Shown piece by piece: positions 50 to 44,176 of a stretch of DNA of 64,000 nucleotides. The position numbers were made by a program, and so were the translations under genes. Under the pieces are notes generated by a model that saw nothing but the letters and a program-made list of their open reading frames with translations, searched no databases and was not told the DNA's origin. Source of the DNA: Macrostomum lignano (lineage: Eukaryota); NCBI GenBank assembly GCA_002269645.1, contig NIVC01000387.1, positions 439,392 through 503,391 on the forward strand. The letters run 5' to 3'. Positions within the stretch are counted from its first letter, which is position 1, and each line of letters starts with the position of its first letter.

Positions 50-1770
50 GGTCATTGGGATTGGTAGCATCACGATTTGGCTATGGTTTGAGGGCATTAG
101 GGTTGGTAGCATCATGATTAGGGCCATGGCTGGGGTCATTGGGATTGGTAGCATCATGATTAGGCCTATCACTTGGGTCATTGGGGTTGGTAGCATCATG
201 ATTAGGGCTATCACTGGGGTCATTGAGATTGGTAGCATCATGATTAGGGCTATCACTGGGGTCATTGAGATTGGTAGCATCATGATTAGGGCTATCACTT
301 GGGTCATTGGGATTGGTAGCATCATGATTAGGCTATCACTTGGGTCATTGGGGTTGGTAGCATCATGATTAGGCTATCACTTGGGTCATTGGGGTTGGTA
401 GCATCATGATTAGGCTATCACTGGGGTCATTGGGGTTGGTAGCATCATGATTAGGGCTATCACTGGGGTCATTGAGATTGGTAGCATCATGATTAGGCTA
501 TCACTTGGGTCATTGGGGTTGGTAGCATCATGATTAGGCTATCACTTGGGTCATTGGGGTTGGTAGCATCATGATTAGGGCTATCACTTGGGTCATTGGG
601 GTTGGTAGCATCATGATTAGGCTATCACTTGGGTCATTGGGATTGGTAGCATCATGATTAGGCTATCACTTGGGTCATTGGGGTTGGTAGCATCATGATT
701 AGGGCTATCACTTGGGTCATTGGGGTTGGTAGCATCATGATTAGGCTATCACTTGGGTCATTGGGGTTGGTAGCATCATGATTAGGGCTATCACTGGGGT
801 CATTGAGATTGGTAGCATCATGATTAGGGCTATCACTTGGGTCATTGGGATTGGTAGCATCATGATTAGGCTATCACTTGGGTCATTGGGTTGGTAGCAT
901 CATGATTAGGCTATCACTTGGGTCATTGGGGTTGGTAGCATCATGATTAGGCTATCACTGGGGTCATTGGGGTTGGTAGCATCATGATTAGGGCTATCAC
1001 TGGGGTCATTGAGATTGGTAGCATCATGATTAGGCTATCACTTGGGTCATTGGGGTTGGTAGCATCATGATTAGGCTATCACTTGGGTCATTGGGGTTGG
1101 TAGCATCATGATTAGGGCTATCACTTGGGTCATTGGGGTTGGTAGCATCATGATTAGGCTATCACTTGGGTCATTGGGATTGGTAGCATCATGATTAGGC
1201 TATCACTTGGGTCATTGGGGTTGGTAGCATCATGATTAGGGCTATCACTTGGGTCATTGGGGTTGGTAGCATCATGATTAGGCTATCACTTGGGTCATTG
1301 GGGTTGGTAGCATCATGATTAGGGCTATCACTTGGGTCATTGGGGTTGGTAGCATCATGATTAGGCTATCACTTGGGTCATTGGGGTTGGTAGCATCATG
1401 ATTAGGCTATCACTTGGGTCATTGGGGTTGGTAGCATCATGATTAGGGCTATCACTTGGGTCATTGGGTTGGTAGCATCATGATTAGGCTATCACTTGGG
1501 TCATTGGGATTGGTAGCATCATGATTAGGCTATCACTTGGGTCATTGGGGTTGGTAGCATCATGATTAGGCTATCACTTGGGTCATTGGGATTGGTAGCA
1601 TCATGATTAGGCTATCACTTGGGTCATTGGGGTTGGTAGCATCATGATTAGGGCTATCACTGGGGTCATTGGGGTTGGTAGCATCATGATTAGGGCAATG
1701 GTTGGGGTCATCGGGATTGGGCATATGACTATGGTTATGGCTGCTATGGTTGGGGTCAACAATCATACCT
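50..1770. repeat. 41/42-bp minisatellite (GGGTCATTGGGGTTGGTAGCATCATGATTAGG(G)CTATCACTT), about 40 copies, degenerate at both ends
   Basis: Direct tandem periodicity. Intronic, ending about 10 bp from the RhoGEF donor at 1778-1779. Confidence 0.95.
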
Positions 1771-1779
1771 TTCACTTAC

Positions 1780-1862
1780 CTTCTTCGGCGGCTTCTTGAC
1801 CTTGGTGAGCAGGAGAATGTCGTCAAACAGGAAGCAGTAGATTTCCACACTCCTGTTGGCTT
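1780..1862 (-). CDS. PLEKHG7: PLEKHG7-like RhoGEF exon (start of PH domain: EANRSVEIYCFLFDDILLLTKVKKPPKK); gene continues beyond window start
   Basis: cccgcag acceptor, GTAAGT donor, phase 1 in / phase 0 out. The Y-x-FLF-x-D-x-LL-x-TK motif is typical of DH-PH GEFs. Confidence 0.85.
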
Positions 1863-1935
1863 CTGCGGGCAAAATGGTTGGCTCAGTGATGCCTCAATCA
1901 TTGACTAAGAATGCAACTGGTGCAGCTCAACTGAC

Positions 1936-2145
1936 CAACAAGACTGAGGAATCCCTCGTGAATCAGCTGCCTCTTCGGGTTGGCGATGAGCTTCTCGCAC
2001 GGCTGACTGCTCAGGCTGCTCTTGAGGAACTCGGGAATGAACACCCGAGTCTCCAGTTCCGTTATTGGCGGCCAGATCAGCTGCTGCTGAATTGTCTGCA
2101 GGCGCTCGAAGTTTCTCAACCACTTGAGCTTGTCCTCCAGACTCT
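1936..2145 (-). CDS. PLEKHG7: PLEKHG7-like RhoGEF exon (SLEDKLKWLRNFERLQTIQQQLIWPPITELETRVFIPEFLKSSLSSQPCEKLIANPKRQLIHEGFLSLV)
   Basis: Resembles the PLEKHG7 DH-PH linker as recalled (LEGKVKWLDNF...IVWPP...FIPE.LK...RHLLYEG.LTL). AG/GT boundaries; 210 nt with phases closing on both neighbours. Confidence 0.88.
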
Positions 2146-2213
2146 CTGTTGAGTTGGTTCGGGCGACTTTGTGATACCCTCTGTGCACTTCCAGTTTATA
2201 AACCCTGCATTAG

Positions 2214-5200
2214 AGGGCTTTAGCCAAGGGGGGTTGTAGCCTAGTGGGGTTGTAGCCAAGGGGGGTTGTAGCCAAGGGGGGTTGTAGCCTAGGGGGGTTG
2301 TAGCCTAGGGGGGTTGTAGCCTAGGGGGGTTGTAGCCTAGGGGGGTTGTAGCCTAGGGGGTTGTAGCCAAGGGGGGTTGTAGCCAAGGGGGGTTGTAGCC
2401 TAGGGGGGTTGTAGCCTAGGGGGGTTGTAGCCTAGGGGGTTGTAGCCAAGGGAGGTTGTAGCCTAGGGGGGTTGTAGCCTAGGGGGGTTGTAGCCTAGGG
2501 GGGTTGTAGCCTAGGGGGGTTGTAGCCTAGTGGGGGTTGTAGCCAAGGGGGGTTGTAGCCAAGGGGGGTTGTAGCCAAGGGGGGTTGTAGCCAAGGGGGT
2601 TGTAGCCAAGGGGGTTGTAGCCAAGGGGGGTTGTAGCCTAGGGGGTTGTAGCCTAGGGGGGTTGTAGCCTAGGGGGGTTGTAGCCTAGGGGGGTTGTAGC
2701 CAAGGGGGGTTGTAGCCAAGGGGGGTTGTAGCCTAGGGGGGTTGTAGCCAAGGGGGTTGTAGCCTAGGGGGGTTGTAGCCTAGTGGGGGTTGTAGCCTAG
2801 GGGGGTTGTAGCCTAGGGGGTTGTAGCCAAGGGGGTTGTAGCCTAGGGGGTTGTAGCCTAGGGGGTTGTAGCCTAGGGGGGTTGTAGCCTAGGGGGTTGT
2901 AGCCTAGGGGGGTTGTAGCCTAGGGGGTTGTAGCCTAGGGGGGTTGTAGCCTAGGGGGGTTGTAGCCTAGGGGGGTTGTAGCCTAGGGGGTTGTAGCCTA
3001 GGGGGGTTGTAGCCAAGGGGGGTTGTAGCCTAGGGGGGTTGTAGCCTAGGGGGGTTGTAGCCTAGGGGGGTTGTAGCCTAGGGGGTTGTAGCCTAGGGGG
3101 GTTGTAGCCTAGGGGGGTTGTAGCCTAGGGGGGTTGTAGCCTAGGGGGGTTGTAGCCAAGGGGGTTGTAGCCTAGGGGGGTTGTAGCCAAGGGGGGTTGT
3201 AGCCTAGGGGGTTGTAGCCTAGGGGGGTTGTAGCCAAGGGGGGTTGTAGCCAAGGGGGGTTGTAGCCTAGGGGGGTTGTAGCCTAGGGGGGTTGTAGCCT
3301 AGGGGGGTTGTAGCCAAGGGGGGTTGTAGCCTAGGGGGGTTGTAGCCTAGGGGGTTGTAGCCTAGGGGGGTTGTAGCCTAGGGGGGTTGTAGCCTAGGGG
3401 GGTTGTAGCCTAGGGGGTTGTAGCCTAGTGGGCGGTTGTAGCCTAGTGGGGGTTGTAGCCAAGGGGGGTTGTAGCCTAGTGGGGGTTGTAGCCTAGTGGG
3501 GGTTGTAGCCTAGTGGGCGGTTGTAGCCTAGTGGGCGGTTGTAGCCTAGTTGGGGTTGTAGCCTAGTTGGGGTTGTAGCCTAGTGGGGGTTGTAGCCTAG
3601 TGGGGGTTGTAGCCTAGTGGGGGTTGTAGCCTAGTGGGGGTTGTAGCCAAGGGGGTTGTAGCCTAGGGGGGTTGTAGCCTAGGGGGGTTGTAGCCTAGGG
3701 GGGTTGTAGCCTAGGGGGGTTGTAGCCTAGTGGGGGTTGTAGCCTAGTGGGCGGTTGTAGCCTAGTGGGGGTTGTAGCCTAGTGGGGGGTTGTAGCCTAG
3801 TGGGGGTTGTAGCCTAGTGGGGGTTGTAGCCTAGTGGGCGGTTGTAGCCTAGTGGGCGGTTGTAGCCTAGTTGGGGTTGTAGCCTAGTTGGGGTTGTAGC
3901 CTAGTGGGGGTTGTAGCCTAGTGGGGGTTGTAGCCTAGTGGGGGTTGTAGCCTAGTGGGGTTGTAGCCAAGGGGGGTTGTAGCCTAGTGGGGGTTGTAGC
4001 CTAGTGGGGGTTGTAGCCTAGTGGGGGTTGTAGCCTAGTGGGGGTTGTAGCCTAGTGGGGGTTGTAGCCTAGTGGGGGTTGTAGCCTAGTGGGGGTTGTA
4101 GCCTAGTGGGGGTTGTAGCCTAGTGGGGGTTGTAGCCTAGTGGGGGTTCTAGCCTAGTGGGGGTTGTAGCCTAGTGGGGGTTGTAGCCTAGTGGGGGTTG
4201 TAGCCTAGTGGGGGTTGTAGCCTAGTGGGGGTTGTAGCCTAGTGGGGGTTGTAGCCTAGGGGGTTGTAGCCTAGGGGGGTTGTAGCCTAGTGGGGGTTGT
4301 AGCCTAGTGGGGGTTGTAGCCTAGTGGGGGTTGTAGCCTAGTGGGGGTTGTAGCCTAGTGGGGGTTGTAGCCTAGTGGGGGTTGTAGCCTAGTGGGGGTT
4401 GTAGCCTAGTGGGGGTTGTAGCCTAGTGGGGGTTGTAGCCTAGTGGGGGTTGTAGCCTAGTGGGGGTTGTAGCCTAGTGGGGGTTGTAGCCTAGTGGGGG
4501 TTGTAGCCTAGTGGGGGTTGTAGCCTAGTGGGGGTTGTAGCCTAGTGGGGGTTGTAGCCTAGTGGGGGTTGTAGCCAAGGGGGGTTGTAGCCTAGTGGGG
4601 GTTGTAGCCTAGTGGGGGTTGTAGCCTAGTGGGCGGTTGTAGCCTAGTGGGCGGTTGTAGCCTAGTTGGGGTTGTAGCCTAGTTGGGGTTGTAGCCTAGT
4701 GGGGGTTGTAGCCTAGTGGGGGTTGTAGCCTAGTGGGGGTTGTAGCCTAGTGGGGGTTGTAGCCTAGTGGGGTTGTAGCCTAGTGGGGGTTGTAGCCTAG
4801 TGGGGGTTGTAGCCTAGTGGGCGGTTGTAGCCTAGTGGGGGTTGTAGCCAAGGGGGGTTGTAGCCTAGTGGGGGTTGTAGCCTAGTGGGGGTTGTAGCCT
4901 AGTGGGGTTGTAGCCTAGGGGGGTTGTAGCCTAGGGGGGTTGTAGCCTAGTGGGGGTTGTAGCCTAGTGGGGGTTGTAGCCTAGTGGGGGTTGTAGCCTA
5001 GTGGGGGTTGTAGCCTAGTGGGGGTTGTAGCCTAGTGGGGGTTGTAGCCTAGTGGGGGTTGTAGCCTAGTGGGGGTTGTAGCCTAGTGGGGGTTGTAGCC
5101 TAGTGGGGGTTGTAGCCTAGTGGGGGTTGTAGCCTAGTGGGGGTTGTAGCCTAGTGGGGGTTGTAGCCTAGTGGGGGTTGTAGCCTAGTGGGGGTTGTAG

Positions 5201-5767
5201 CCTAGTGGGGGTTGTAGCCTAGTGGGCGGTTGTAGCCTAGTGGGGGTTGTAGCCAAGGGGGGTTGTAGCCTAGTGGGGGTTGTAGCCTAGTGGGGGTTGT
5301 AGCCTAGTGGGCGGTTGTAGCCTAGTGGGCGGTTGTAGCCTAGTGGGCGGTTGTAGCCTAGTTGGGGTTGTAGCCTAGTTGGGGTTGTAGCCTAGTGGGG
5401 GTTGTAGCCTAGTGGGCGGTTGTAGCCTAGTGGGGGTTGTAGCCTAGTTGGGGTTGTAGCCTAGTGGGGGTTGTAGCCTAGTGGGGGTTGTAGCCTAGTG
5501 GGGGTTGTAGCCTAGTGGGCGGTTGTAGCCTAGTTGGGGTTGTAGCCTAGTTGGGGTTGTAGCCTAGTTGGGGTTGTAGCCTAGTGGGCGGTTGTAGCCT
5601 AGTGGGGGTTGTAGCCTAGTGGGCGGTTGTAGCCTAGTTGGGGTTGTAGCCTAGTTGGGGTTGTAGCCTAGTGGGGGTTGTAGCCTAGTGGGTTGTAGCC
5701 TAGTGGGGGTTGTAGCCTAGTGGGGTTGTAGCCTAGTGGGGGTTGTAGCCTAGTGGGGTTGTAGCCT
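2214..5767. repeat. 16/17-bp G-rich minisatellite (GGGGGGTTGTAGCCTA / GTGGGGGTTGTAGCCTA), about 215 copies
   Basis: Direct periodicity. The unit contains TAGCCTAGTGG, which matches the Pol III A-box consensus. Confidence 0.95.
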
Positions 5768-6052
5768 GTAGCCTACTCAGCCTACTTGAAGGTCGGGGGA
5801 CTTGAAGGTCGGGGTTCGATTCTCAGTCCCACTGGAATAATTTGTGTCCTTGAGCAAGACTCCTAACTCTGCTTTGCTTCAGTTCACTCAGCTGTAAAAT
5901 GGGTTCCAGCATTAGCTGGGGTAATTGAGGTGTGTGTGGGTGGCCCCCAGTCCTTGGACTGAACAGCCGTACGGAGCCTTTAGATGCGCCGCGCAATAGC
6001 CGCGGCTGCACAACTGCCCATGAATCAATAATGTAATCAATTGTTATCATTA
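5750..6052 (+). mobile_element. tRNA-derived CORE-type SINE
   Basis: B-box GGTTCGATTC at 5813-5822, followed by GTGTCCTTGAGCAAGAC...CTTCAGTTCACTCAGCTGTAAAATGGG, which resembles the MIR/CORE domain (GTGACCTTGGGCAAGT...CCTCAGTTTCCTCATCTGTAAAATGGG). AT-rich ATT/ATC tail. 3' boundary approximate. Confidence 0.72.
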
Positions 6053-6165
6053 TCAGAGGGTACACGATAGAGGTCAGAAGCACCCCCACGCCCTACTAAT
6101 TGCGCAATACCGGCCCTAACAGATCAGGATTCGGCTAACCGAACAAAGCAGCAGCTGGGACTCAC

Positions 6166-6340
6166 TCAGCGAGTTCTCAACCCGTCTCAGATTCTCGGTG
6201 AGAAGCGCCCGGCTGCTGTCCTCAGCCGTGTAGCGCCGGATGCTGGCCAGGAGCAGCGGCATTTTCGTGCAGTGCTGCATCGGCGCCACCAGCAGGTCGG
6301 CGATCTTCAGCCGATGGCAGCGGGGGTCCTGCTCGCACCA
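6166..6340 (-). CDS. PLEKHG7: PLEKHG7-like RhoGEF exon, DH domain (WCEQDPRCHRLKIADLLVAPMQHCTKMPLLLASIRRYT...VENSL)
   Basis: DH CR3-type motif (L..LL..P.Q...K.PLLL). ctgcag acceptor, GTGAGT donor, 175 nt. Confidence 0.9.
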
Positions 6341-6689
6341 CTGCAGCGGGGTAATATGCTAGAGATATGCTGACTCAACCTACTCTTAGTGTACGCTCGT
6401 AGTAGTATAAACGCAAAAAAGTCTAGGGCGAGCAACTTCCTAAATTTATTCGTAAAAAGGCAATTCTGACAAAACATAACTAAGAATGGCATTCTTTTTT
6501 ATTTCCTCAACGTGTGTAAAATATCGTAGCAGATAGCAAAATTCATACGGTAGAATGACGTCATATGTGCACTTTTTACTGGAGGCCGGTTATCGCTGCG
6601 AAATGCATTTGCTAGGTAGGACGTTGTAGATCAGACTTTTTACCTCAAGGGCCGGAAAAAGAATCTGGATAATTGCTACGGGCCGGATG

Positions 6690-6892
6690 AGAGAGGAAAG
6701 GAGAGGGAGCAGAGGAGAGAGAAGAGGAAAGGATATGAGAGATGGGAGATGAGAGAGAAGAATGGAGAGATGAGAGTGGAGAAGAAAGGAGAGGAGAGGA
6801 AAAAAGAAAGGAGAGAGATGAGAGATGAGAGGAGAGAGAAGATAAGAGGAGAGAACAGAAGAGAGAGAGGAGAAGAGAGAGGAGAGAAGAGA
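6690..6892. repeat. GA-rich low-complexity tract
   Basis: Almost pure purine on the + strand. Confidence 0.8.
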
Positions 6893-7220
6893 ATTTATGT
6901 GTTTATTCAGAAGCTGATACTTATAATTTGAAAAAATGAAGATCAGAGAGAGAGACGCATCAATATGGTTGCGTTATCTTAGATGGATTTCGTAAAGATT
7001 CTCTGTTTGCCTGCCGTGACTTTGGGGTTTTGCCATAGACAAAACTTGGTCGGAGAAAACTGCACTAAAGAGATAGGAACAGCTGAACTTTCTAAGAAAC
7101 AGCTGGGAAAATAGCTTTCTATCTCGCTGATGATTTTGCGAGCGCGGTATCCTTTTACGTTGTTCCTGCATACCGAGAGGCAGCCAAGGACCCTGGAAGC
7201 AACATCATTAGAACTCGCAC

Positions 7221-7337
7221 CTTTTCAAACTCGGCAAACTGCTCATGCCGGCGCAGAATGTCCAGGTAGGTGACGGCGCAGTGATAATTGAGGCAGTAGC
7301 TGTGAAACACTTCTCCGTCTTTGGAGGTCAGAGTCCA
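7221..7337 (-). CDS. PLEKHG7: PLEKHG7-like exon, DH domain (WTLTSKDGEVFHSYCLNYHCAVTYLDILRRHEQFAEFEK)
   Basis: YCLNY motif; 117 nt, phase 0/0, canonical splice sites. Confidence 0.88.
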
Positions 7338-7423
7338 CTGCAGGAGGGTCCGAGTGGGTGCGAGAATGGTGAGAATTCAGCGAGCTAATACGTTTGAGAT
7401 TTGTTTTGAGTAAATTAAGTTAC

Positions 7424-7525
7424 CCTCTTGAAGGCCTTCAGCAGACCGGCCGTCGTGCCGAACTGGCGCTTGCGAGCCTCCTTGGTGAGGATGGAGATGA
7501 GGTCCCGGGAGAAGGTGTAGCTCAC
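7424..7525 (-). CDS. PLEKHG7: PLEKHG7-like exon, DH domain (VSYTFSRDLISILTKEARKRQFGTTAGLLKAFKR)
   Basis: 102 nt, phase 0/0, ctag acceptor and GTAACT donor. Confidence 0.82.
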
Positions 7526-7605
7526 CTAGCAACCAGAGGCGCAGGTGTATTCATTAGTTACTACCTATGATTCTATAGCGATTGACCAACTAACGAGCTG
7601 CTTAC

Positions 7606-7701
7606 ATAGCAGAGTTCGTCGATGTTGCCGAACAGGTCCTCGGGCTCCACGAACATCAGATGGCCGTCCACCTGCAGCTTCTTTAACGGCTCGAAAAAGC
7701 A
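7606..7701 (-). CDS. PLEKHG7: PLEKHG7-like exon, DH domain (CFFEPLKKLQVDGHLMFVEPEDLFGNIDELCY)
   Basis: LFGNIDEL DH motif; 96 nt, phase 0/0, GTAAG donor. Confidence 0.88.
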
Positions 7702-8187
7702 CTGCAAGTTATAGAGGGCCCCGTCTTCGGTTACGCTGGGTCAGGTTGGGTCAGTGTTTCGGGGTTGGTTCGGGTACACAAAACTGAAATTAAATTTTCC
7801 CAACTAATTTAAGAGTTACATGCCACGAAATCACCAAGCAATTCTATCGGGTGATATATCATATTGGCTGGCCAATCAGTCGCAGGTGCATGCTGGTCCA
7901 GCTACACGGGAGAACCAATACCGGTACCTTTTTGTCGGCGAGAGCCAACAATATTTCTAAAGTCTCCTCTAGAAGAAGAAGAACAAAAAAATCGGATAGA
8001 CTTGCAAAAAGAAGTTTGGCCAGACCAGAAGCTCAAAACGTGCCTTAGGCAGAAGTTTTAAATTTCTCTCAGGGCCTGAAATATTTATCAGCTGCTGGCG
8101 GCTGAGGAAAAAAGTCAAGCGAGGCTTCGCGGCGAGATTTGAAATGAAGCCGCCAGAGGCGGGCGGGAGGCCGGTGCTTCGACTTTA

Positions 8188-8300
<113 letters not shown>

Positions 8301-8324
8301 AGAGGCCGCAGCTGGGGACAGGCG

Positions 8325-8476
8325 CATTGTGGCTCAGCTGATCCCTGAGAGCTCTGACACCCTGTGCTGGCACTGTGGCTCAGCTGATCCCTGAGAGCTC
8401 TGACACCCTGTGCTGGCACTGTGGCTCAGCTGATCCCTGAGAGCTCTGACACCCTGTGCTGGCACTGTGGCTCAGT
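8325..8476. repeat. 46-bp tandem repeat, about 3.3 copies
   Basis: CACTGTGGCTCAGCTGATCCCTGAGAGCTCTGACACCCTGTGCTGG repeated. Confidence 0.9.
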
Positions 8477-8539
8477 CTAAATCTGAGATAAATTGACCCT
8501 CTACTCACTGTCAGCCAAAACCCAGCCGCTTAAACTCAC

Positions 8540-8776
8540 GTGCTTCAGCACCATTAGGTAGTCAATAAGGAAGTTCAGCTCAGACTTGAACAGCTCCCAG
8601 ACGGCTTCCCGCCGCAGCCGCTCCGTGTCCTCCAGCTCTGCCGGCTGCGTTGATGCCCCGGCCGAGGCCCCGGCGGATGCTGCGGCAGTCGAGGACGACG
8701 ACGAGGAGGACATGGAGGAGGAGGGCCTCGCGGCCGAGCCGGACTCGCGCTCGACCAGCTCTCGCCAGTGGGTGTT
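8540..8776 (-). CDS. PLEKHG7: PLEKHG7-like exon, start of DH domain (NTHWRELVERE...RLRREAVWELFKSELNFLIDYLMVLKH)
   Basis: EA(V/I)WELF.SE DH CR1 motif of the PLEKHG5/6/7 type; 237 nt, phase 0/0. Confidence 0.9.
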
Positions 8777-22430: not shown

Positions 22431-22470
22431 CAGGTAGCTAGTCACTATTATCGCTGATAAAAAGTCGCAC

Positions 22471-22954
22471 CTGATCCGATTCCGTCACCGCAGCAGCTGG
22501 CCGGCAGGCGGACAAGGAGGCCGCAGTCGCAGACGAGCCGGCGGCCCGCGGCGGTGCTGAGAATCCGCAGCTGGCCACAGCGGCAGGCGGGGCAGACGCA
22601 GCCGCACTGGCTGAGCTCGCGCCGCATCGCCGCCTCGATCTCTAAGAGTTCGTCGCTGTCCATCCACTCAAAGCCGCCGCCGCCGCCGCCGATCTCGGCG
22701 TCAAGGAGCTGCTCGAGCTCGCGGCGAACGTCGTAATCATCAGAGGCCGCAGCGGCGCCGTCCTCGTCAGCCTGGCGGACGCGCATAAGAAAATCGGAGC
22801 GGCGCCGGCGCATCTCCTCCAGGCAGCGCCGGCGGAAGCCGCTCTTCCAGGGACTCCGGTGCCGCGCTCGGTCGTACAGCTGCTGGTGCTGTCGGCCCAG
22901 AGGGCTGCCGGGCGCCGGGGCTGGGCTGCGCGGAGAGGTGCCGGACATCTGCAT
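22471..22954 (-). CDS. RPAIN: RPA-interacting protein (RIP/RPAIN) exon 1
   Basis: LY...SPWK..FRRRCLEEMRRRR..FL.R.RQ N-terminal motif and CPAC...L...C.CG Zn-finger. Donor CAG/GTGCG. Confidence 0.85.
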
Positions 22955-26438: not shown

Positions 26439-26482
26439 TCACTTGGACTTGCTGTGCTGGATCAGCCACTGCAGTGTTATGT
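26439..26482 (-). CDS. ARL8: ARL8 last exon ((D)ITLQWLIQHSKSK*)
   Basis: Matches the ARL8 C-terminus; tttcag acceptor, phase 1, TGA at 26439-26441. Confidence 0.92.
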
Positions 26483-26809
26483 CTGAAAGTTTGTAGCAGA
26501 GTTAAAGCGGTAAATCAGGAGCGCGGGAAGTAGATTGAGAGGGAGAGTGGGAAGCAGGGCGAGAGGGAGAGCTGGGAGTAGAGTGGGAGGGAGAGTGGGG
26601 AGTAGAGTGAGAAGGAGACTGGGGAGTAGAGTGAGAGGGAGAGTGAGAAGTAGAGTGAGGTGAGAGGGAGAGTGAGGAGTAGAGTGAGAGGGAAAGTGGG
26701 GAGGATTGAGAGAGAGGGAGTGGGGAGTAGGGTGAGGGGGAGTGAGGAGTAGATTGAGAGGGAGAGTGGGGAGTAGAGTGGGAGGGAGAGTGGGGAGAAA
26801 GCTGGAGAT

Positions 26810-27625
26810 CCCCTGTCTAACAGGTGACACTATCCCCTGTCTAACAGGTGACACTATCTCCTGTCTAACAGGTGACACTATCCCTTGTCTAACAGGTGAC
26901 ACTATCCCCTGTCTAACAGGTGACACTATCCCTTGTCTAACAGGTGACACTATCCCTTGTCTAACAGGTGACACTATCCCTTGTCTAACAGGTGACACTA
27001 TCCCCTGTCTAACAGGTGACACTATCCCTTGTCTAACAGGTGACACTATCCCCTGTCTAACAGGTGACACTATCCCTTGTCTAACAGGTGACACTATCCC
27101 CTGTCTAACAGGTGACACTATCCCTTGTCTAACAGGTGACACTATCTCCTGTCTAACAGGTGACACTATCCCTTGTCTAACAGGTGACACTATCCCTTGT
27201 CTAACAGGTGACACTATCCCTTGTCTAACAGGTGACACTATCCCTTGTCTAACAGGTGACACTATCCCTTGTCTAACAGGTGACACTATCCCTTGTCTAA
27301 CAGGTGACACTATCCCTTGTCTAACAGGTGACACTATCTCCTGTCTAGCAGGTGACACTATCCCTTGTCTAACAGGTGACACTATCCCCTGTCTAACAGG
27401 TGACACTATCCCCTGTCTAACAGGTGACACTATCTCCTGTCTAACAGGTGACACTATCCCTTGTCTAACAGGTGACACTATCCCCTGTCTAACAGGTGAC
27501 ACTATCCCTTGTCTAACAGGTGACACTATCTCCTGTCTAACAGGTGACACTATCCCTTGTCTAACAGGTGACACTATCCCTCTCTAACAGGTGACACTAT
27601 CCCCTCTCTAACAGGTGACATTGTC
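26810..27625. repeat. 24-bp minisatellite (ATCCCTTGTCTAACAGGTGACACT), about 34 copies, embedded in a purine-rich tract (26520-26800 and 27645-27770)
   Basis: Direct periodicity; lies in ARL8 intron 2. Confidence 0.95.
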
Positions 27626-27784
27626 TAGACAGACTATTCTGTCTAGGGAAAGTGGGGAGTAGAGTGAGAGAGAGTGGGGAGAAGAGAGGATGAGAAGTAG
27701 AAAGGAGAGAATACGAGCTATCAGAACGGGGAGTTGTGTGGAAAGTGGTAGGAGGGCATGTGAGGGAGAAGGGGCGGCACTGAC

Positions 27785-28172
27785 CGATATTCTCCTTCTC
27801 CTTGCAGCTGATGGAGTAGCAGCAGATCTCTCTGTCGGTGATGCCGTCAAGGCTGAGCCGCTCGATAAGCTGCCTCTCGTTGAGGGAGCCCTGCAGGTCT
27901 CGCTTGTTGCCCAGCACGAGCACCGGGATGCCCTGCAGCTGCGGCTTGTCGAGCAGGTTGTGCAGCTCGTTCCTGGCCGCCTCCAGCTTGTCGGCGTCGG
28001 CCGCGTCCACCATGTAGACGATGGCGTTGACACCGCGGCAGTAGCGCTCCCACATGCTGCGGAAGCGGGGCTGGCCGCCAATGTCCCATAGCTTGATGGT
28101 GACGCTGCCCTTGGTGATCTTTCGCATGTTGAAGCCCACGGTGGGGATCATGTCCTCTGTGAACTGGCCGGA
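27785..28172 (-). CDS. ARL8: ARL8 (ADP-ribosylation factor-like 8) exon 2
   Basis: [22 protein letters not shown]...[20 protein letters not shown]...LGNKRDL...[14 protein letters not shown]; 388 nt, phase 0 in / 1 out. Confidence 0.96.
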
Positions 28173-29026
28173 CTGGGAGTGGGTTGGGGAAACACAAAGT
28201 TATTTTCAATATCTTCATCAAAATGCAATAGGAGATAAGGACAACGCTCATTGAAGGTGTAAACTGAGATACAAGATTAAAATGTCACTTCTTGTGACCG
28301 TAACACATTTCTTCCTATGCCAAACCCATGCTAAAAGCAACTGCAATCAGTCAGATGTCAGTCAGATTTTCAACTATATTGTAAGTGAACAAAGTCTATT
28401 ATAACAAAGTTTATTTGTGTATGTTGACAATTTTATATCAATAAATACTTAATGAATTTAAAAAATAATCCTAAGGAAAAATTAGGAAGTGAGCTTATAC
28501 ATAGATTGAAGGATAAAAAATATATTATATGGCTTATAAAATTGATACAGATAATTTTATAAATCAATACATTAAAAAAGTTAGTTTAAAAAGTACTTTA
28601 ATAAGTTATCTATTATTTATAGTTTAATTAGATCATTTATATTTAAAGGCTTAGATTATAAGTTATTATATGGTAAGTTTTTTCTACATAAGATGTAAAG
28701 CAAATATCATAGATAATAGATGCCAGCTAGCATCCTAGTTTTTAATTTGGATCTTAAAAATGGCACAGTAATACCAATACTTAAAAACTTAGCTTTTATG
28801 TATGATTTATATGAGAATGACTTATGCAAGTTTTAATAAGTGTTTTATATAGCTTTGTATAGGGACTTCAGTGAGGATCTCATGATTTACCAATATTTAT
28901 ACGAAGGGAAAAGTTAAAAAATATATTTTTGCAAATATATAACTTTAGAATAAATCTTTTTATAAAGAAAAATATTTTATAAATGTATATGGCTTCCATT
29001 AGAATGAAAATAAACTATACCCCATT

Positions 29027-29312
29027 GGGAAATAATTGTCCCTTAGTTATGCCAAATGACATACAAAAATGGATAAGATAAAAAAAATCAATATAGTAAC
29101 AATTATTAATAATTAGTGCACAATTGTAGCAATCATAATTGTTTTACAACTGATATCATTACTCCTATTTGGCACAATAATATACTAATTTATATTATAT
29201 TATAACTATGCCAACTATGCCAAAAGGATATTTGAGGGCAATTAAATGTGCTAATTGGCATAGTCTGGCATATTTGGCAAAATTATAGATTATGTTAGGG
29301 TAATTATTTCCC
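29027..29312. mobile_element. Putative PIF/Harbinger-type MITE (286 bp)
   Basis: 11-bp perfect TIRs GGGAAATAATT / AATTATTTCCC, flanked by ATT on both sides (3-bp TSD). Internal ATGCCAA/TTGGCA motifs. Confidence 0.5.
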
Positions 29313-30111
29313 ATTAAGTCTAGGACCTATATTTGAGACATTACAAAATAGGTGCTTTTGTACTAAGCCAATATAATAAATATATTTTTTAATTTTTAAT
29401 TAATCTTCAAGTATAGTTATATATATATATATATTATATAATATTTCAATATATAATATTTCAATAAAGTTCTCACTATTTTTATATTTTTAATAGGTTA
29501 GGCTTAGCTTTATTGTCTTAGGTCAAGAAACAAATTTTAATATGCTGTTTATTATAGGAGGAAAATAGAACCAAAGTTATAATTGTACAGACATTTGCAG
29601 GGTTTTCTTTTTTGCGAGAGAAAGGGTGCAAAATTGCACCCTATGCTCACTTTCATGGTGCAATTTTAAGGCTCAAAGTGCAATTTCTCTTTTTTCTTAT
29701 TTTAAGGCAGTGCAAATAAGGCTTTAATAGAAAAATAGGTTATGAGACCGCACCTAAACTGCATCTATGTTTTAATTGTGCTAGGGGTATTCCCGTACGA
29801 TACAAAATCCTACTGCTGTAACCAAAGTTGTAACAAGGCTTTTTCTTCTGTCCTCCAACTAACTTTACTAACTGCCACCAAGTTGTTACAGGGGTTATTC
29901 CTGTTTGCCAACTACAGTTATCCTGATTATACTTGTTTTCACTCCCTAACTATTTCTCAGAATTTCATTTAAATACCTTTGGGTAGCGTTCTTAGTAGCG
30001 TTTTTGGTAGCATTCTCATACATGCGCAACTTCTGAAATTATGCTGGCCGTGCGACTTAGTTTTCGATAAAAAATGCGACTTACCTATGAAAGAGCCAAG
30101 CAAAAACTTTA

Positions 30112-30175
30112 GGTAAACGGCAGGAGTAACTATGACCATATTTTTAAAGCTTAATGCCTCGCCAGCTAATTAGTG
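30112..30175 (+). pseudogene. Diverged 28S rRNA fragment (LSU helix 69-71 region)
   Basis: GGTAAACGGCAGGAGTAACTATGAC...AATGCCTCGCCAGCTAATTAGTG versus the conserved 28S GGTAAACGGCGGGAGTAACTATGACTCTCTTAAGGTAGCCAAATGCCTCGTCATCTAATTAGTG. Confidence 0.8.
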
Positions 30176-30629
30176 CTGCGTGCAGATTTCGCGTTTTTAT
30201 AACAGCTAATCAGTATGTCATCTAGTGGCGGCATGAAGCAATTAGTAAATTGTCAGTACAGTGTAGTGAGCATACTACAAAAGTCATGATTCATGAATGT
30301 CCAGAAGTAAGTGAAGTGAATACAGTGTGACCTATAGCTCAAGAACGATTTGCTAGACGATTTGGCATGGAAGATGAGAGCCCTGATTCAGATGGCTCAT
30401 CAGATGCAGAATACGAATCCAGTAGAGATACAAGCTGTGAAAACCCACAGATTTTTAAACCACTGAATTCTAATTCCCGGAACTATTTTTGCATAGATTC
30501 TAAATTTGAAGTCATGCTCAAACAAAAACTTGTTAACAGTTAGGAAAAAGGCAAAGATGGGAGTAAATGCATGTTAAACTAAGATTTGAGGCCTTTGCAA
30601 ATTCTCTCCATTCCTCAATCTTCTCATCC

Positions 30630-31260
30630 TCTTTTTCTTTTCTCTCTCATCCCTTATCCCTTCTCTCTTTCCTCTCCTCTCCTATCTCTTCTGTCTCCTC
30701 TCTACATTCTTATTTCTCCTCTCGTCTCTCTCCATTCCACTCTACTCTTTCATCTTATCTTCCCTCTCGTGTCTCTCCACTCTACTCTCTCATCTTATCT
30801 CTCCTCTCTTTTCTACTCTCTCATCTCTCCTCTCTTCACTCTCCTCTCATCTCCTCTTTATCCTCTCTTCTCTCATCTACTCTCTCCTCTTTCCTCTTTC
30901 CTCTCTTCTGATCTCATCCATCATCTTTTCTTTCCTCTTTCCTCTCATCTCCTCTTCTCTCTCATCTCTTTTTCCTCCCTCAGCTTTTCTCTCCTCTTCT
31001 ATCTTTTTCCCATCGCATCGCTCGCCTCTCCTCTGTTTGCTTATCTCTAATCTTCTATTCCCTCTACTTTGAAGTAAGAAAATATGCACATATTTTTGCT
31101 GAAGATAAGAGGAGAGAAGAGGGCATTGAGGAGAAAGGGTAGAGAGAAAGGGGAGAAGAGAGGAGAGTAAAAATGAGAGGAGAGAGAAGAGGGAAAAGGG
31201 GGAGAGAGAGAAGAGGGGAGGCAAGGTAGAGAAGAAGAGAGAGATGAGAGTTGAAGAGAC
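30630..31260. repeat. TC-rich tract (30630-31050) followed by GA-rich tract (31105-31260)
   Basis: Low-complexity pyrimidine then purine tracts inside the transposon. Confidence 0.8.
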
Positions 31261-31299
31261 ACCAACCTTTCTACTCGTAGTTAGGAAGTTTCAAAGAAC

Positions 31300-31355
31300 C
31301 CGAGGGGCGAGGGCCAGATAGAGGGGCTTCGCGAGCCGGAGTTTGCCGACCCCTG
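31300..31355 (-). mobile_element. Orphan hAT/MITE-like terminus (reverse complement CAGGGGTCGGCAAACTCCGGCTCGCGA)
   Basis: Resembles common hAT MITE ends; partner end and TSD not found. Confidence 0.4.
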
Positions 31356-33233
31356 CTCCAGAGTTTAAGAAATCAATGGGAAACTGTTGACGCAGGCTTC
31401 TGATTTCAAAGATCTTGTCTGTTGTTGAAGGCTTCTATTCTGTTTTTGCTCTCCTGCCACACTTGCACCTACTACCCCCTGATTGCCTCTGATTGTGACT
31501 TACTTCCCTCTTATTGTGACTTAGCTGATCCTTTTTGCGACTTACCTAATCCTTTTTGCGACTTACCTAACCCTTTTTGCGACTTACCTAATCCTGTTGC
31601 AACTTACCTGATCCTTTTTGCGACTTGCCTAATCCTGTTGCAACTTACCTGATCCTTTTTGCGACTTGCCTGATTATTTTTACAACTTAGTTTGCTTCTT
31701 TTGCGAATTGTTTTTCTTTTGCTTCACCATTTTCCCTGAACTGCTCTTTCTTTCGCTTTCCTCTTGCCTTTTTTGGTTCTTGTGTTTTTCTGTTTTTGGT
31801 TGACTCAATTTTGCGACTTACCCCTGGTCAGCCACGATTTATGGTGGCCAGATCGGCCAGGTCGGCCAGCAGTTGCGCATGTATGAGCATTCTGGTAGCT
31901 TATGGCTAGCTTTCTGGTAGCTTATGGCTAGCTTTCTGGTAGCATTCTGGTAGCTTATGGCCTGAGCGGTCTAATACTGGTATATGTATTAGTGAATAGT
32001 CCTAATCGGGCGTTACTGAGACTAGAGGGTCATGGCACCTCTCGTAATACTTCTACAAATTGTTCCCCGATTCTCTTTTCTTAGCAAATCTCTTGGAATC
32101 GTTTCTCAGACTTTGCAAATGAATAAGTCGCTATTCAACTCGAAAGACTTTGAAAGGTTTAGATTGAACTGCTTATTTTGTTCGCAATATTGCTCACAGG
32201 TAAAAGACAGTTGGTTTATTTGCTACAAAACCGCTCTTATATACAGTGGTTTCCCCCCCTATACGATTAAAACAAAAAATAATTCCCCAATTTATTTTGC
32301 ACAGTAAAACAAAATATTCAGTATGGTAAAACAAAATATTTATCTAGTATTTCACACGAGTTTGGTTTCTAAGAAAACATACCTTTATTGCTCAAAATTC
32401 GTACAGTATTGGAGCACTACTATATAATTTCAGGGTGCAATTTTAAAATGTAAGGTCCATATGCACACTCTATGCACAAAAAATAAACCTAGGACATTTG
32501 TTATAGCAAAAAAATAATTTTCATAGTCTTCCAATGTAGTGTTTTAGGCTAAAGGCTAATGTTTTAAAATATGGTTATTAAGGTTTTACATATCCATATG
32601 CTAAAAATTCTAGATATATTAGATTTATTCTTATTAAGACAATATACATATATTATATAATATATAATATATATTAATGTGAGAAAACTATTTTATCACT
32701 AGACCAATTTTTAAAAAGTGTCTTGCTGTTTAAAAAAATGAGATTTATCAATTAGAAATATAAAAATATTTTTAAAAATAACTAACTTTATTTTAATAAA
32801 ATCCTTTCTAATCAATAATATAATATATATAGCTCATTAATTTCAAATTGATTTGAAAATAATAGTCCATTGTTTCATTTTTTGCTAGAACATATTCTTA
32901 TAAAAGATAATGCCATGATCTAAAATGATAAAGCTTAGTCTATAGATGTCTTTCTTTTAAAGTTTTGTTTTGTTCTTAATTCTGACAATATTAATTGATA
33001 ATAATAACCAATACTAATGAGCCAGTAATACATATATAAAACATATACATATAGTTTAAATGAAGCATGTTATTTAAGATTGTTGTCAATAAGTGAAAAG
33101 AGAAAACTCAATTTGAATAGGTCTATTCTATATATGAATTGACTTCATACAAATACAAGCCACAGTTTTTGTTGACATGCTTTGTATCAGATTCAATCTG
33201 AATTTAATGTGGTCTAAGATGCAGAAAACTTAC

Positions 33234-33356
33234 AGCGATCACATTGACGAACGTTGTCTTTCCTGAATTTTGAAGACCAACTAGTGTCAACTCCATTTCT
33301 TCCTTCCAAAAAAGGCTCTTAACCCAATCCAAGATTCGCTGGACAAGGGCAAACAT
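33234..33356 (-). CDS. ARL8: ARL8 exon 1 ([41 protein letters not shown])
   Basis: Typical ARL8 amphipathic N-terminus plus P-loop; 123 nt, GTAAGT donor, phase 0. Confidence 0.95.
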
Positions 33357-36225
33357 TTTGAGAGAAACGGTTCTAATATAATAGTACGATTACAACTGAC
33401 TTTACAAAATTAGTAACCAGCTGCAAAACTGCCGAAGTTAAATTAGAAAGTTAAATTCAGACACAATGTTAATTAAGAGTAGGATTAAATAAATGAATAA
33501 GTATAGGTGACTATGACACTATTTAAATAATGTGATTTAACTAGCCTGTGTTTTTACCGACTTTAAATTATCGCATACAAGATAAAAAATTTTTTTACCG
33601 ACACTTACTTTAATTTATTTAACTGCCTAAACATATTTAGAAGCAAAAGCTTTAATAGTTAGCACTTAGCTTTTGTCTCTGGTTTTACTTATATTTGTTT
33701 AGCATAGAGTCGTGAATACCGGCAATTTAAGTTCTTAATATAAAAAGAGCGACGTTAAATCGACGAAGTGAAAGTCTTTACCGTAAAAAGATCTATAATC
33801 CTCTTTGATAAGAAAATTATATCTAATAATCCAGAATACAAATTTTGCTCATTAATTTTAACTTTTACGATAAATATTGTGCATATATTGTGACTGAAAT
33901 GTCACGAAAAAAATAGTATTGACAATTGCATGGGCATAAAGTAATCCTCAAAATAACACATATCTCAACATATATTCAAATTATTTTTCATTATTTTTTA
34001 ACTGCTTTCCCAAGAATTACAAGGAACTAATTCAAAGGCATCGACTATTTGATCGACATCGACTGCAAAAAATGGGCGCAAAGCGAAGTATATTAAAGTT
34101 ATAAATGAGTTTAAAGTCTGAGTTTAAATTCAAGTTTAACTATCAACAGTACTCCTCTAATATGTACTGCGTGGCAACCGTAATTTCAAAAAAGAAATTG
34201 TTCTATCTACAAGTGTTTTTGTTGTGGCACCTATTTTTCATTGATTGGCGTCGGTGCTTAAGAAATGCTGGCGAAAATTCGCCCGTGAAAAAATTTTGCT
34301 GAAGCTTATAAAATTGATGCAAAACACAACAATTATACTAGTTGATATTCTTATATGCGTTTTAAATGAGAAAAAGCGGAAAAAAACTTCCCCACACTTT
34401 CGCCAGCCAGCCAGCATTTTGCCGGCTTTTCGCCAACACTGCAACTGTTTTCTCAGGGTTTTTCGCCTTTTTTTCTCAATAGGGCAAAAACTTAACCGGA
34501 AAATCCACTATAGAAAACGCTCTCAGAAAAAGATACTAAAGAAATACATGTACGCATACATGCATGTACATGAATATACAACACATAGGAAAAAAAGAAA
34601 TTAGTATAGCAATGAGACAGCAACAGCAACTGTATAATTTTAATGCATGCGCTTCTGATACAATTAAGCATTCAGTAAGCAAACCGGTAATTTTAATTTG
34701 ATGCAAGAGGAGGTGCGTTTAGTTCTAGCTGAGGAAGTTAGCAGCAAGAAGACGTGCTTTTTAATCAATTTGATTTTGCGGATGGATGCCCCAGTGTGTA
34801 CGTGCGCATGTTGCCTCAATTTTTCACTAATAGCTGAAGCTTGCTCAGCTGTATACAAAGCTCAGAAAAACAAATCCTGCTTACTATATAAGGCCATGAG
34901 CTGCCGGCGTGCATGGTCTAAGAATTTAATCTCTTTATTCTGTTTTTATGCCCAGTCAAGCTGCGGCAGTTCTCTCGCCCGATCCTCAGCTTGAGCCGGC
35001 TTCCGTCCCCGATCTCTTTTTTTGCCGCGGTTCACCCAACGCCCGTGTGTCGACAAACAGGAATATGAAAACTGAATGCTGATGACTGAAAGAGGAAGGA
35101 ACAGAGGAGACCAACGAATGAGGTCGGAGAAAGAAGAGGAGGAGAGGAGACAGATAGGCCGGGAGCGCATGCACTAGTCGCTCGATTCCCTGTCCCCATC
35201 CGTCAGGACTGGGGGAGGAGGCTGGCTGGACGTGAGCTGGGCCTCGGGGAGGTTTCAGAGTCCAGTGGGCGGCTGTCGGCTCCAGATAGTCGGAAGGTGC
35301 GGGAAAGGGAGAGAGATATTGGGGCAGAGAAATCGGACTCGAAGGCAGCGCGCTTTCTCCCATCCTGCTCCCGACCGGCATTCCATTCGCCCTCCCCCAG
35401 AGCCTACACCCTCCCGACCGACCTCACCTGCAGCGCACAGATGAGCCCATAAGCTCGTCTCAGCCATCCGTGGCCTCTCCTGCAGCCCAGTTTCCTCCGC
35501 AGCTCGCCTGCGCAAGCTTCCAAAATCTCAGAGCCCGTGTTGCTCTCTCAAACATCGTGACAGTTGCACCGCACAGCAATCATGGAGCGCTCCAGCGTGA
35601 CAACAACACCAGAAACAGTGAGAGCAAGCCCTGATCTTACTGAGCAAACCTGAGCTCTGAGTTCGCTAATCTTTTGTCGCAAATCCTAATTTTATTCTGT
35701 TCTTCACTTTTGAGTCAAAAATGTTTGTGCTCAGACGGGAGTGCATCAGATTTCAAATGGTTCAGCTCAGCCTTGCCAAGAGCTAATTTTAACAGAAATA
35801 TAAAGCTGTTCAAGGCAGGGCTAAAGCCTGCCTGCTTCGGTCGCTACATCTTGCATCTGAGAACAAGCACGCTGTCCTCCCGCCCCCCCCCTCCCTCCTC
35901 CGAGGCTGAAGGGATTCGATTCCCTAAAGGATTTGGATCTCTCGCAATGCAGACATTGGCATCAAATTTTAATCGCAAAGGACCTCCCTCCCTAGCTCGC
36001 CGTGGCTATCTCTGATGACAGCCTCTCTGTTCCTCATCACTGTTGCTGCCCGCCTGATCTTATCCCCAGCTCTTAATCCCAGTATATTCCCCTTTAGAAT
36101 AATCTAGTTACACATGACTTGCCTAATTTTCCCATTTCCGATGCAGCCGCTCTTGAGCTGTGAAAGCGGCTGAATTCGGATTTCGGTGCACCGAAAATTG
36201 TTGAATGGAAATCCAGCTGGCCCGC

Positions 36226-39200: not shown

Positions 39201-39411
39201 AACAGATTGATGAGCTGTAGGAAACCGAGACTCAATTCCGCTCGCAATGATCAGCATAAACAGATTGATGAGCTGTAGGAAACCGAGACTCAATTCCGCT
39301 CGCAATGATCAGCATAAACAGATTGATGAGCTGTAGGAAACTGAGACTCAATTCCGCTCGCAATGATCAGCATAAACAGATTGATGAGCTGTAGGAAACC
39401 GAGACTCAATT
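36226..39411. repeat. 58-bp minisatellite (GCTCGCAATGATCAGCATAAACAGATTGATGAGCTGTAGGAAACCGAGACTCAATTCC), about 55 copies
   Basis: Direct periodicity with three recurring variant sites. Confidence 0.97.
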
Positions 39412-39556
39412 CAGAGTCAGGTTGAAACCAATACGAATTCTCGTAAATTCTAAAAAAGCTGGAAACAATTATTTCAAGGGGTCATTTCTCTGTCACAAGC
39501 ACTTCATTTCCCTTCATGCGTCTCAGAAAATCACGCTGGACGCCAATGGGGACGGC

Positions 39557-40048
39557 ATGTCCGTGTTCCAAAATCCTCGCTTCCGCCTGTGCGCTCACCA
39601 CTTGAATGCCGGCAGCCAGGCGGCCGAAGCCATGCCAATGTACAACTTCTTCGTGTGCCTCAACGACTCGCGCTATACGAAGATCTTCAGCGACATGGAG
39701 CGGGGCATCAGCGACCGGCGCGACCGCGGCCTGCCGATCCTGGCCGCCATCATCGGAGTCTACTGTTTATTCATCCTGTTCGGTGCGTTCGGAAATGGCC
39801 TCGTCATGCTGACTGTGTGCCGCAACCGGGCCATGCGCACCGCCCGGAACCTCTTCATATTCAACCTGGCCCTGTCCGACTTCATTCTGTGCCTCTTCAC
39901 GCAGCCGCTCAACCTGCTGCGCCTGTTCCCCGACTACATCAGCTGGGAATTTGGCGAGCTTCTCTGCAAAGTGGTCAACACTCTCACCGGTCTCAATATG
40001 TTTGTGTCCACGTTTTCGATTACAGCCATCGCACTGGACCGCTTCCAG
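39557..40048 (+). CDS. NPY/NPF-receptor-like class A GPCR exon 1 (N-terminus, TM1-TM3)
   Basis: GN..V, MRTARNLFIFNLALSD, LCK, DRF motifs; CAG/GTGAGT donor, phase 0. Start codon is the first in-frame ATG and is tentative. Confidence 0.9.
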
Positions 40049-43487: not shown

Positions 43488-43628
43488 TTAAGGGAAGTCA
43501 TCCAAGAACTGAGCATCGAACACACTACAAAGAGAAGGGAAAATTTAGGTGCCCAAAGCTTGGATTATACAGCATGACAGTTCATACTCTATCAGCCACA
43601 ACTTTACATGCCTCATCTTAACCTGCAG

Positions 43629-44105: not shown

Positions 44106-44176
44106 GTGAGTAGAAGACCCTTGATCTTGGCTGACTCGGTTCTGCGACAATTGACAACCACAAATTGACTGCTGAC

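Follow-up and report, generated by a model that had tools for sequence, protein, structure and literature searches.

A G-rich intronic minisatellite of Macrostomum lignano whose unit matches the box A end of the adjoining tRNA-type CORE-SINE

We analyzed the last 64 kb of the Macrostomum lignano contig NIVC01000387.1 (503,391 bp, assembly GCA_002269645.1), a stretch that we call the window. An intron of a RhoGEF gene, encoded on the minus strand, holds two adjoining elements on the plus strand. One is a minisatellite of 3.55 kb (2218-5767) made of about 213 tandem units of 15-18 nt, and the other, immediately 3′ of it, is a decayed tRNA-type CORE-SINE (short interspersed nuclear element). As detailed below, an intact copy from this SINE family supports the view that the array unit corresponds to the 5′ end of the adjoining element, i.e., the acceptor-stem strand together with box A of its RNA polymerase III (Pol III) promoter. 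The features of the locus are listed in Table 1.

The array was called by Tandem Repeats Finder (TRF) at 2221-5767, with a period of 17, 214.4 copies, 95% matches, and the consensus TAGCCTAGTGGGGGTTG. When it is split at TTGTAGCC, 213 anchors result, and the units, of 15-18 nt, are of 12 types. The commonest of these is TTGTAGCCTAGTGGGGG (86 copies), followed by units of the types ..CCTAGGGGGG (45 copies), ..CCAAGGGGGG (20), ..TAGTGGGCGG (17), and ..TAGTTGGGG (14), and the remaining variants differ in the length of the G run alone. The repeat can be written in short form as (GGGGTTGTAGCCTAGT)n, and the first unit, starting at 2218, is degenerate (CTTTAGCCAAGGGGGG). The box A consensus TRGCNNAGTGG has 113 matches in the 64 kb, when 0.84 would be expected by chance; all of them are within the array and on the plus strand, with none elsewhere in the window, and no other array of the window has a box A. 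These 113 units carry box A as TAGCCTAGTGG. Near-consensus versions are found in 86 units with TAGCC.AGGGG and 14 with TAGCCTAGTTGG. The two strands are markedly asymmetric (47% G, GC skew of about 0.52). In unit size (within about 10-100 bp), array length (within 0.5-30 kb), internal variants, and strand asymmetry, the array is a minisatellite.

The SINE behind the array retains a remodeled head, box B, a CORE domain, and an AT-rich tail. The remnant of the mid-head at 5767-5783 contains small duplications of 7 nt and 9 nt. From box B to the CORE, the element aligns in register with the MIR consensus (71/97 identities, E of 1e-11); the assignment to the CORE-SINE class follows from this alignment and not from a curated library. 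We found no box B-like match within 2218-5767, the only one of the region being at 5813. All 113 box A matches (113/113) share the strand of this single box B and of the CORE, and all lie 5′ of both. The last three are 67, 84, and 100 nt upstream of box B, and even the last is this far away because of the local duplications. The head of this copy is no longer recognized as tRNA-like: it had no match in Rfam, even at an E value of up to 10, and none with ARAGORN. The first oligo-T run downstream of the element is at 6262. A self-BLAST of the SINE body against the 64 kb revealed no second copy in the window. The hexamer AGAGGG brackets the array and the SINE together, as would be expected if a target-site duplication enclosed the two as one insertion, although the match is weak (Table 1).

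Table 1. Positions in the window, strand, and supporting evidence for the features of the array-bearing intron
Feature	Positions	Strand	Basis
Minisatellite, ~213 units, modal TTGTAGCCTAGTGGGGG, homologous to SINE head positions 1-18 (acceptor-stem strand and box A)	2218..5767	+	TRF, unit census, box A count, 18/18 identity with the start of the L039 SINE
Rearranged D-arm/anticodon-arm remnant of the SINE head, TGTAGCCTACTCAGCCT, with duplications TGTAGCC x2 and AGCCTACTN x2	5767..5783	+	Alignment to the intact L039 head, direct reading
Variable-loop and T-stem part of the head, as a 16-nt tandem duplication ACTTGAAGGTCGGGG(G) x2	5784..5815	+	TRF row 5784-5814; single copy in L039
Pol III box B GGTTCGATTCT, 1 mismatch to GGTTCGANNCC; 3′ T-stem mutated relative to L039	5813..5823	+	Motif match, L039 comparison
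SINE body: CORE ~5843-5903 (TGTGTCCTTGAGCAAG...CTGTAAAATGGG), conserved 3′ region (..GATGCGCCGCGCAATAGCCGCGGCTG..), AT-rich tail ending TTATCATTATC	5824..6054	+	MIR alignment; L039 identity
Candidate 5′ target-site duplication AGAGGG, just before the first degenerate unit	2212..2217	+	6 nt; ~7% by chance, weak
Candidate 3′ target-site duplication AGAGGG, just after the SINE tail	6055..6060	+	6 nt; similarity to L039 ends here
Host intron of the PLEKHG7-like RhoGEF, 4,020 nt, GT 6165-6164, AG 2147-2146	2146..6165	-	tblastn of Capitella, Paragonimus, and Helobdella homologues; spliced product; Pfam RhoGEF
Upstream RhoGEF exon (DH domain)	6166..6340	-	Homologue alignment, Pfam
Downstream RhoGEF exon (DH end and PH start)	1937..2145	-	Homologue alignment

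The key comparison comes from an independent copy of the SINE. We searched 1.84 billion protein cluster representatives with the minus-strand pseudo-open reading frame (pseudo-ORF) that runs through the SINE (5826-6089), and one of the seven matches, a 60-aa protein (P0135), is clearly a translated SINE. Its source is an 861-bp contig of an ENA metagenome (ERZ28655790 scaffold_137897, here L039), which has, on the strand opposite to P0135, an intact SINE of the same family (308 to about 636 of the reverse complement). This element is 88% identical to 5799-6008 of the window (over 212 nt), with unrelated flanks. Its head reads GGGGTTGTAGCCTAGTGG TTAGAGCGTCGGACTCACG ACTTGAAGGTCGGGGGTTCGATTCCCGACTCCACTGG (onward as ACTTGAAGGTCGGGGGTTCGATTCC..). 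It starts with exactly one array unit, GGGGTTGTAGCCTAGTGG (18/18 identities), in which box A occupies positions 8-18. The unit is followed by remnants of the D and anticodon arms, the part that is scrambled in the window copy, then by a perfect box B and the CORE. This box B, GGTTCGATTCC, begins 43 nt downstream of the start of box A, within the spacing of about 30-60 nt that marks tRNA-derived SINEs. Searched against the models of the tRNA clan, the L039 head matched the tmRNA model with 21 bits (E of 2e-6), which is below the gathering threshold, and ARAGORN found nothing.

The unit also stands out from its neighbors when compared with the intact SINE. We aligned 19 array units of the window to this element, and the 17-mer obtained a score of 18 that none of 300 shuffles reached, while the other 18 units remained at the noise level. 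Three candidates for a similar origin were examined and rejected. The 41-mer array at 49-1694 includes GGGGTTGGTAGC, which resembles the head, but its score was only 12 (p of about 0.13). The 58-mer array at 36222 scored better through a poor, gappy alignment, and the 23-mer arrays at 20029 and 21068 gave noise-level or poor alignments.

A preliminary description of this locus, made from the sequence alone, had announced an array of about 3.5 kb with some 200 box A-bearing units, followed by GACTTGAAGGTCGGGGTTCGATTC (variable loop and box B), a CORE-like domain, and an AT-rich tail. Our counts, the presence of GACTTGAAGGTCGGGGTTCGATTC, the box B at 5813-5823, the MIR alignment, and the end of the tail at about 6054 agree with it. 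The same holds for its proposal that the array was amplified from the first 17 nt or so of the SINE, which is where the unit falls in L039. It had further predicted that other copies of the SINE would begin with a single unit, and the one intact independent copy does so. It was inexact in stating that the array runs with no spacer into the box B region, since about 45 nt of rearranged and duplicated head lie in between.

Is the family present in other places? A stretch of 24 residues in the M. lignano protein model A0A1I8IW39 (P0137) is 92% identical to the translated L039 SINE, so that, judging from this match, the family is present elsewhere in M. lignano. This model, of 1,452 aa, is described as having a "Ras-associating domain," and the SINE piece corresponds to its residues 324-347; it is either an exonized SINE or an annotation artifact. 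Over these 24 residues, the window copy is only 64% identical to the model. Because the translation of L039 is nearer to the M. lignano protein than that of the window copy, the sampled metagenome may contain flatworm DNA. Elsewhere, patterns of the SINE and of the unit had no match in viral contigs or in contigs of prokaryotic genomes. A pattern from box B to the CORE retrieved 37 loci in metagenome contigs, all belonging to other SINE families (fish-type and others, 65 to 75% similar). The pseudo-ORF of the window SINE returned no record in other assemblies, nor did the paralogous RhoGEF return one. In the text of the literature, the sequence strings of the element retrieved only irrelevant matches and the sample accessions of L039 none.

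The host gene encodes a RhoGEF with Dbl homology (DH) and pleckstrin homology (PH) domains, matched by the Pfam RhoGEF family, whose best matches are in Capitella (56%) and in Paragonimus, where it is named "PLEKHG7" (61%). The product spliced across the intron, ..RRVENSLKSLEDKLKWLRNF.., matches ..LETSLKNLEAKMRWLKNF.. of Capitella. Alignment to the homologues confirmed the antisense placement in a RhoGEF intron that had been described earlier and set the limits of the intron at 2146-6165. We also considered an acceptor at 2208, which would be 13 nt from the array and would have the SINE separating the branch point from the 3′ splice site; it was rejected, the homologue alignment placing the acceptor at 2147-2146. 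The array makes up 88% of the intron and comes to within about 70 nt of the 3′ splice site, and only some 175 to 180 nt of the intron belong neither to the array nor to the SINE. On the gene strand, the array introduces into the pre-mRNA about 190 CUAG/G motifs, each preceded by C runs, which could act as cryptic acceptors. The effect on the host gene is likely just a 20-fold longer intron. The gene itself (1700-8713, minus strand) appears to be absent from the GenBank protein set. The annotation of M. lignano in GenBank removed transcripts overlapping repeats (Wudarski et al. 2017, PMC5730564), and this filter perhaps explains the absence. The UniProt model of a paralogue, A0A1I8G2K6 (75% identical), stops exactly at the end of the exon preceding the array-bearing intron. 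The swelling of an intron of about 175 nt to 4 kb in a conserved RhoGEF shows how the repeat load of M. lignano acts on gene models.

The internal organization of the array informs on its age. The variant map shows that nearly all of the 5′ ~75 units are T-less (TAGGGGGG or CAAGGGGGG) and that the 3′ ~137 units are of the canonical type (TAGTGGGGG). Hence, the canonical box A units adjoin the SINE body, and the derived variants are distal to it. In a letter code for unit types, a block of 12 units, ACAADDFFAAAA, is present twice, and a block of 9 units, AADDFFAAA, three times. The recurrence of such blocks implies that growth included unequal exchange of several units at a time, not slippage of single units alone. 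The window SINE, for its part, is about 12% diverged from the L039 copy, and its mid-head is scrambled. Given the variant sub-blocks, the block duplications, and the remodeling of the adjoining SINE, the array is mature rather than nascent. This does not fit the earlier suggestion of a minisatellite "being born," which the 213 units in two compositional halves contradict.

How did the SINE head become an array? We consider it very probable that a SINE insertion was followed by duplication of its head in place, by slippage, and by neutral growth to about 213 units. A tRNA-derived CORE-type SINE would have inserted antisense into an intron of about 175 nt of the PLEKHG7-like RhoGEF gene. Afterwards, its first 16-17 nt (acceptor-stem strand and box A, GGGGTTGTAGCCTAGTG) would have been duplicated in place. 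The most likely trigger would be replication slippage between short G-rich direct repeats within the head. The array could then have reached its present size through more slippage and through unequal exchange of multi-unit blocks. Over the same period, smaller slippage events may have scrambled the mid-head, giving the duplications of 7, 9, and 16 nt. This would have left a G-rich minisatellite in the intron, with the remainder of the SINE preserved as an "extended terminal unit." The array would most probably be a neutral by-product of a genome unusually prone to the growth of tandem repeats, not a functional Pol III/TFIIIC element.

The sequence of the intact head is consistent with this scenario. 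Two of its stretches, GGTTGTAGC at positions 3-11 and GGTTAGAGC at positions 17-25, form an imperfect direct repeat whose copies are 14 nt apart. The head also has GG/GGTT at positions 1-6 and 17-20, and GG/GGGG flanks what was to become the unit. Such direct repeats are the substrate required by the Haber-Louis model of slippage and unequal exchange, which PMC3389668 and PMC6947457 cite for repeats derived from transposable elements (TEs). The order of events may be approached through the promoter of the SINE. In type-2 Pol III promoters, the transcript begins a short distance before the box A working together with box B. Units farther upstream would thus not be carried along by retroposition, and from this we infer that the repeated head expanded in place and was not transported to the locus; the single head of L039 agrees with this. 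Quadruplex formation by the G-rich strand could also have played a part in the instability of the array. This strand has 214 runs of three or more G, spaced by 12 nt, and with loops of this length the array has no canonical G-quadruplex (G4, loops of up to 7 nt). In a rough ViennaRNA calculation, a long-loop G4 was nevertheless energetically competitive; a role for such a structure, e.g., that of (GGGGGTTGTAGCCTAGT)4, is a conjecture.

Several points weigh against this scenario. L039 is a metagenome contig, and the family is represented by only one intact member and one translated fragment. The candidate target-site duplication has only 6 nt (a match expected in about 7% of cases by chance), and another 6-mer match exists. 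Slippage between the GGTT repeats of the head predicts a 14-nt unit with GG, whereas 4 to 6 G are observed. Furthermore, the variants in G-run length may include PacBio homopolymer errors, and the neutrality of the array is an assumption.

These results should also be weighed against other explanations. The tandem heads could have been seeded during retroposition, with slippage acting later. The reverse transcriptase would have switched template or primed again when it reached the 5′ end of the SINE RNA, or else the source RNA would already have had a few repeats. The array does start right at the candidate 5′ target-site duplication, and 5′-end partial duplications of Alu insertions are a recognized subclass of TE-derived tandem repeats, with 136 cases (PMC3389668). 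Yet, L039 has one head, a transcript starting near the box A paired with box B would exclude the upstream units, and the block structure shows that most of the growth occurred by exchange at the DNA level. Nothing sets such a seed apart from slippage after insertion. We find this alternative improbable. It is hardly credible, on the other hand, that a 5′-truncated SINE came by coincidence to lie beside a preexisting, unrelated minisatellite that resembles the 5′ end of a tRNA. With more than 20 unrelated minisatellites over 56% of the window, a neighboring one is likely a priori, and the mid-head is indeed missing or rearranged. But coincidence does not account for the 18/18 identity between the unit and the start of an independent, intact SINE, where orientation and order are also as expected, nor for the lack of box A in every other array of the window, and we regard it as effectively refuted already. 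The array could also be real while its length and variant map were distorted by the long-read assembly of a low-complexity repeat. The assembly Mlig_3_7 is based on long reads and has known redundancy, many unit variants differ by G-run length alone, and the contig ends inside another array. We find such a distortion very improbable. Substitution variants (T deletion, T>A, GGGCGG, TAGTTGG) occur in ordered blocks and repeated higher-order motifs, which random error would not yield. Besides, both flanks of the array are unique exon sequences in the correct order.

If the array was not a mere by-product, the stack of box A could be maintained by selection for the recruitment of TFIIIC or Pol III, for insulation, or for staggered Pol III starts. 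The preliminary description had raised TFIIIC binding, insulation, and staggered starts, all of them purely speculative. One strand carries 113 exact and about 100 near-consensus box A, and the last three are 67, 84, and 100 nt before a near-consensus box B, spacings that are within or near the range tolerated by TFIIIC. However, box B is the high-affinity site of TFIIIC, and the array, having no box B, lacks what such binding requires. TFIIIC-bound elements of the extra-TFIIIC (ETC) or insulator type would have a box B inside the repeat unit; here, the single box B is outside the array and imperfect. In addition, the head of this copy no longer scores as tRNA-like with models of the tRNA clan, no oligo-T terminator precedes 6262, and the array resembles many other minisatellites of the locus. 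We found no sign of function for the array, and selection for any of these three activities appears very improbable. At most, and only in the event that this copy is transcribed, the last two or three box A could be rival elements of its promoter.

The preferred scenario of in-place expansion would gain in scope if amplification of SINE heads were a recurrent route to minisatellites in M. lignano, driven by the GGGGTT/GGTT repeats in the head of the family. We consider this unlikely. If true, SINE 5′ ends would add measurably to the tandem repeats of this genome, of which simple and tandem repeats constitute 15% (Wudarski et al. 2017, PMC5730564). The notion of "SINE-derived satellites," which have been described from squamates alone so far, would then reach invertebrates and the scale of minisatellites. 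Where arrays of box A precede one box B, Pol III starts could be displaced or become more numerous.

The surroundings of the RhoGEF gene are themselves very rich in repeats. Arrays called by TRF cover 56.5% of the window and fall into more than 20 unrelated minisatellite families with units of 9-58 nt, about 13-55 copies each, and 91-99% identity. A satellite of 33 nt (TAGAAGAGTCTATCGAGACTGGAATCATAGTCA) extends from 46737 to 64000 with more than 530 copies at 96% identity; it reaches the end of the contig, evidently the point at which assembly failed. ORF finders call spurious frames of as many as 2,667 aa through this satellite. In the next RhoGEF intron, some 60 nt separate the donor from the 41-mer array (49-1694, about 40 copies). 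Between the RhoGEF gene and a neuropeptide F/Y-type receptor gene (exons at about 39422-40060, 43608-44168, and 45188-45601), we identified an ORF resembling RPA-interacting protein (Pfam RPA_interact_N, 22451-22954, minus strand) and a three-exon ARL8 gene (184 aa, 26439-33356, minus strand), and several arrays are within the introns of these two genes or between them. The 58-mer array (36222-39412, with 55 copies at 98% identity) stops 10 nt short of the ORF with the first coding exon of the receptor and so occupies its promoter or 5′ region. An intron of the receptor gene contains the remnant of a piggyBac-type transposase (41674-42534, minus strand; Pfam DDE_Tnp_1_7, E of 2e-12), and the region of this gene also has a short, degenerate telomere-like repeat (AACCCTAACCTAAATCTA x3.8, 44180-44246).

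The layout of the element is that of known SINEs. In CORE-SINEs (MIR/Ther-1 and relatives), as reported by Gilbert and Labuda in 1999, a tRNA-like head carrying both promoter boxes, A and B, precedes a CORE of about 65 nt. The window element has the same layout and register, and the box A of MIR, TAGCATAGTGG, is one position off the TAGCCTAGTGG of the unit. It differs from MIR in being of a flatworm family with a different 3′ region, and the copy of the window has lost a recognizable tRNA fold. As a tandem repeat, the array can be likened to CEB1 and CEB25, which are G-quadruplex-prone human minisatellites, in its strong strand asymmetry and its regularly spaced G runs; it differs from them by its 12-nt loops and by the lack of a canonical G4.

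Minisatellites and satellites derived from SINEs are already known, and this array is a clean but ordinary case. Among human minisatellites and satellites, 23% are TE-derived and were expanded by local duplication (Ahmed and Liang 2012, PMC3389668). Those listed in PMC6947457 include an Alu-derived minisatellite, (CGGGAGGC)n (Jurka and Gentles 2006), and an unstable mouse variable number tandem repeat derived from B1, (GGCAGA)n (Bois et al. 1998). There, as here, a short SINE segment between short direct repeats gave rise, by amplification in place, to a G-rich minisatellite. The Alu and B1 units are internal segments of 7SL-derived SINEs, whereas the present unit is the 5′-terminal box A segment of a tRNA-derived CORE-SINE, and the number of copies, about 213, is large for one locus of TE origin. 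Tandem repeats with tRNA-like or Pol III promoter sequences also exist in amphibians (Xenopus satellite 1/OAX, newt PolIII/TAN, and Hydromantes Hy/PolIII; PMC10702118, PMC6947457). Their units, of 200-750 nt, hold a whole tRNA-like gene, and their link to a real SINE is unproven (PMC10702118), whereas here the progenitor SINE is attached to the array.

The closest parallel is with the squamate SINE-derived satellites (sSat1-3, together sSats) described by Vassetzky, Kosushkin, and Ryskov (2023, Mob DNA, PMC10702118). Like the present array, they are tandem repeats of a portion of a tRNA-related SINE, and their terminal unit is longer, continuing as far as the SINE terminus; here it extends through the remnant head, box B, the CORE, and the tail (5767-6054). 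They also have hundreds of units (up to about 1000 in sSats), locus-specific subvariants, and alternating blocks, and they are proposed to start with a local duplication followed by amplification. The differences concern scale and distribution. Units of sSats measure 70-290 nt and often include box B or SINE body, and they occur at tens to thousands of loci, homogenized among one another, with a preference for subtelomeres; the unit described here comprises the 5′ terminus with box A only and is known from one intronic locus of a flatworm. With a unit of only 15-18 nt, the element works like an sSat of minisatellite size. The authors of the squamate study state that the existence of sSats outside squamates is not known either way (PMC10702118). 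The array opens no new mechanism and answers no open question. Its particulars are a 16-17-nt unit formed by the 5′-terminal box A segment only, a CORE-SINE progenitor, and a flatworm host. With the progenitor still attached to its tandem repeat, it is a clean and legible example, and, because one can still see the unit, its source, and the microhomology of the head, it would serve well as a textbook-style case of a slippage-seeded origin. It also widens the range of SINE-derived tandem arrays to include a flatworm host and a unit of 16-17 nt.

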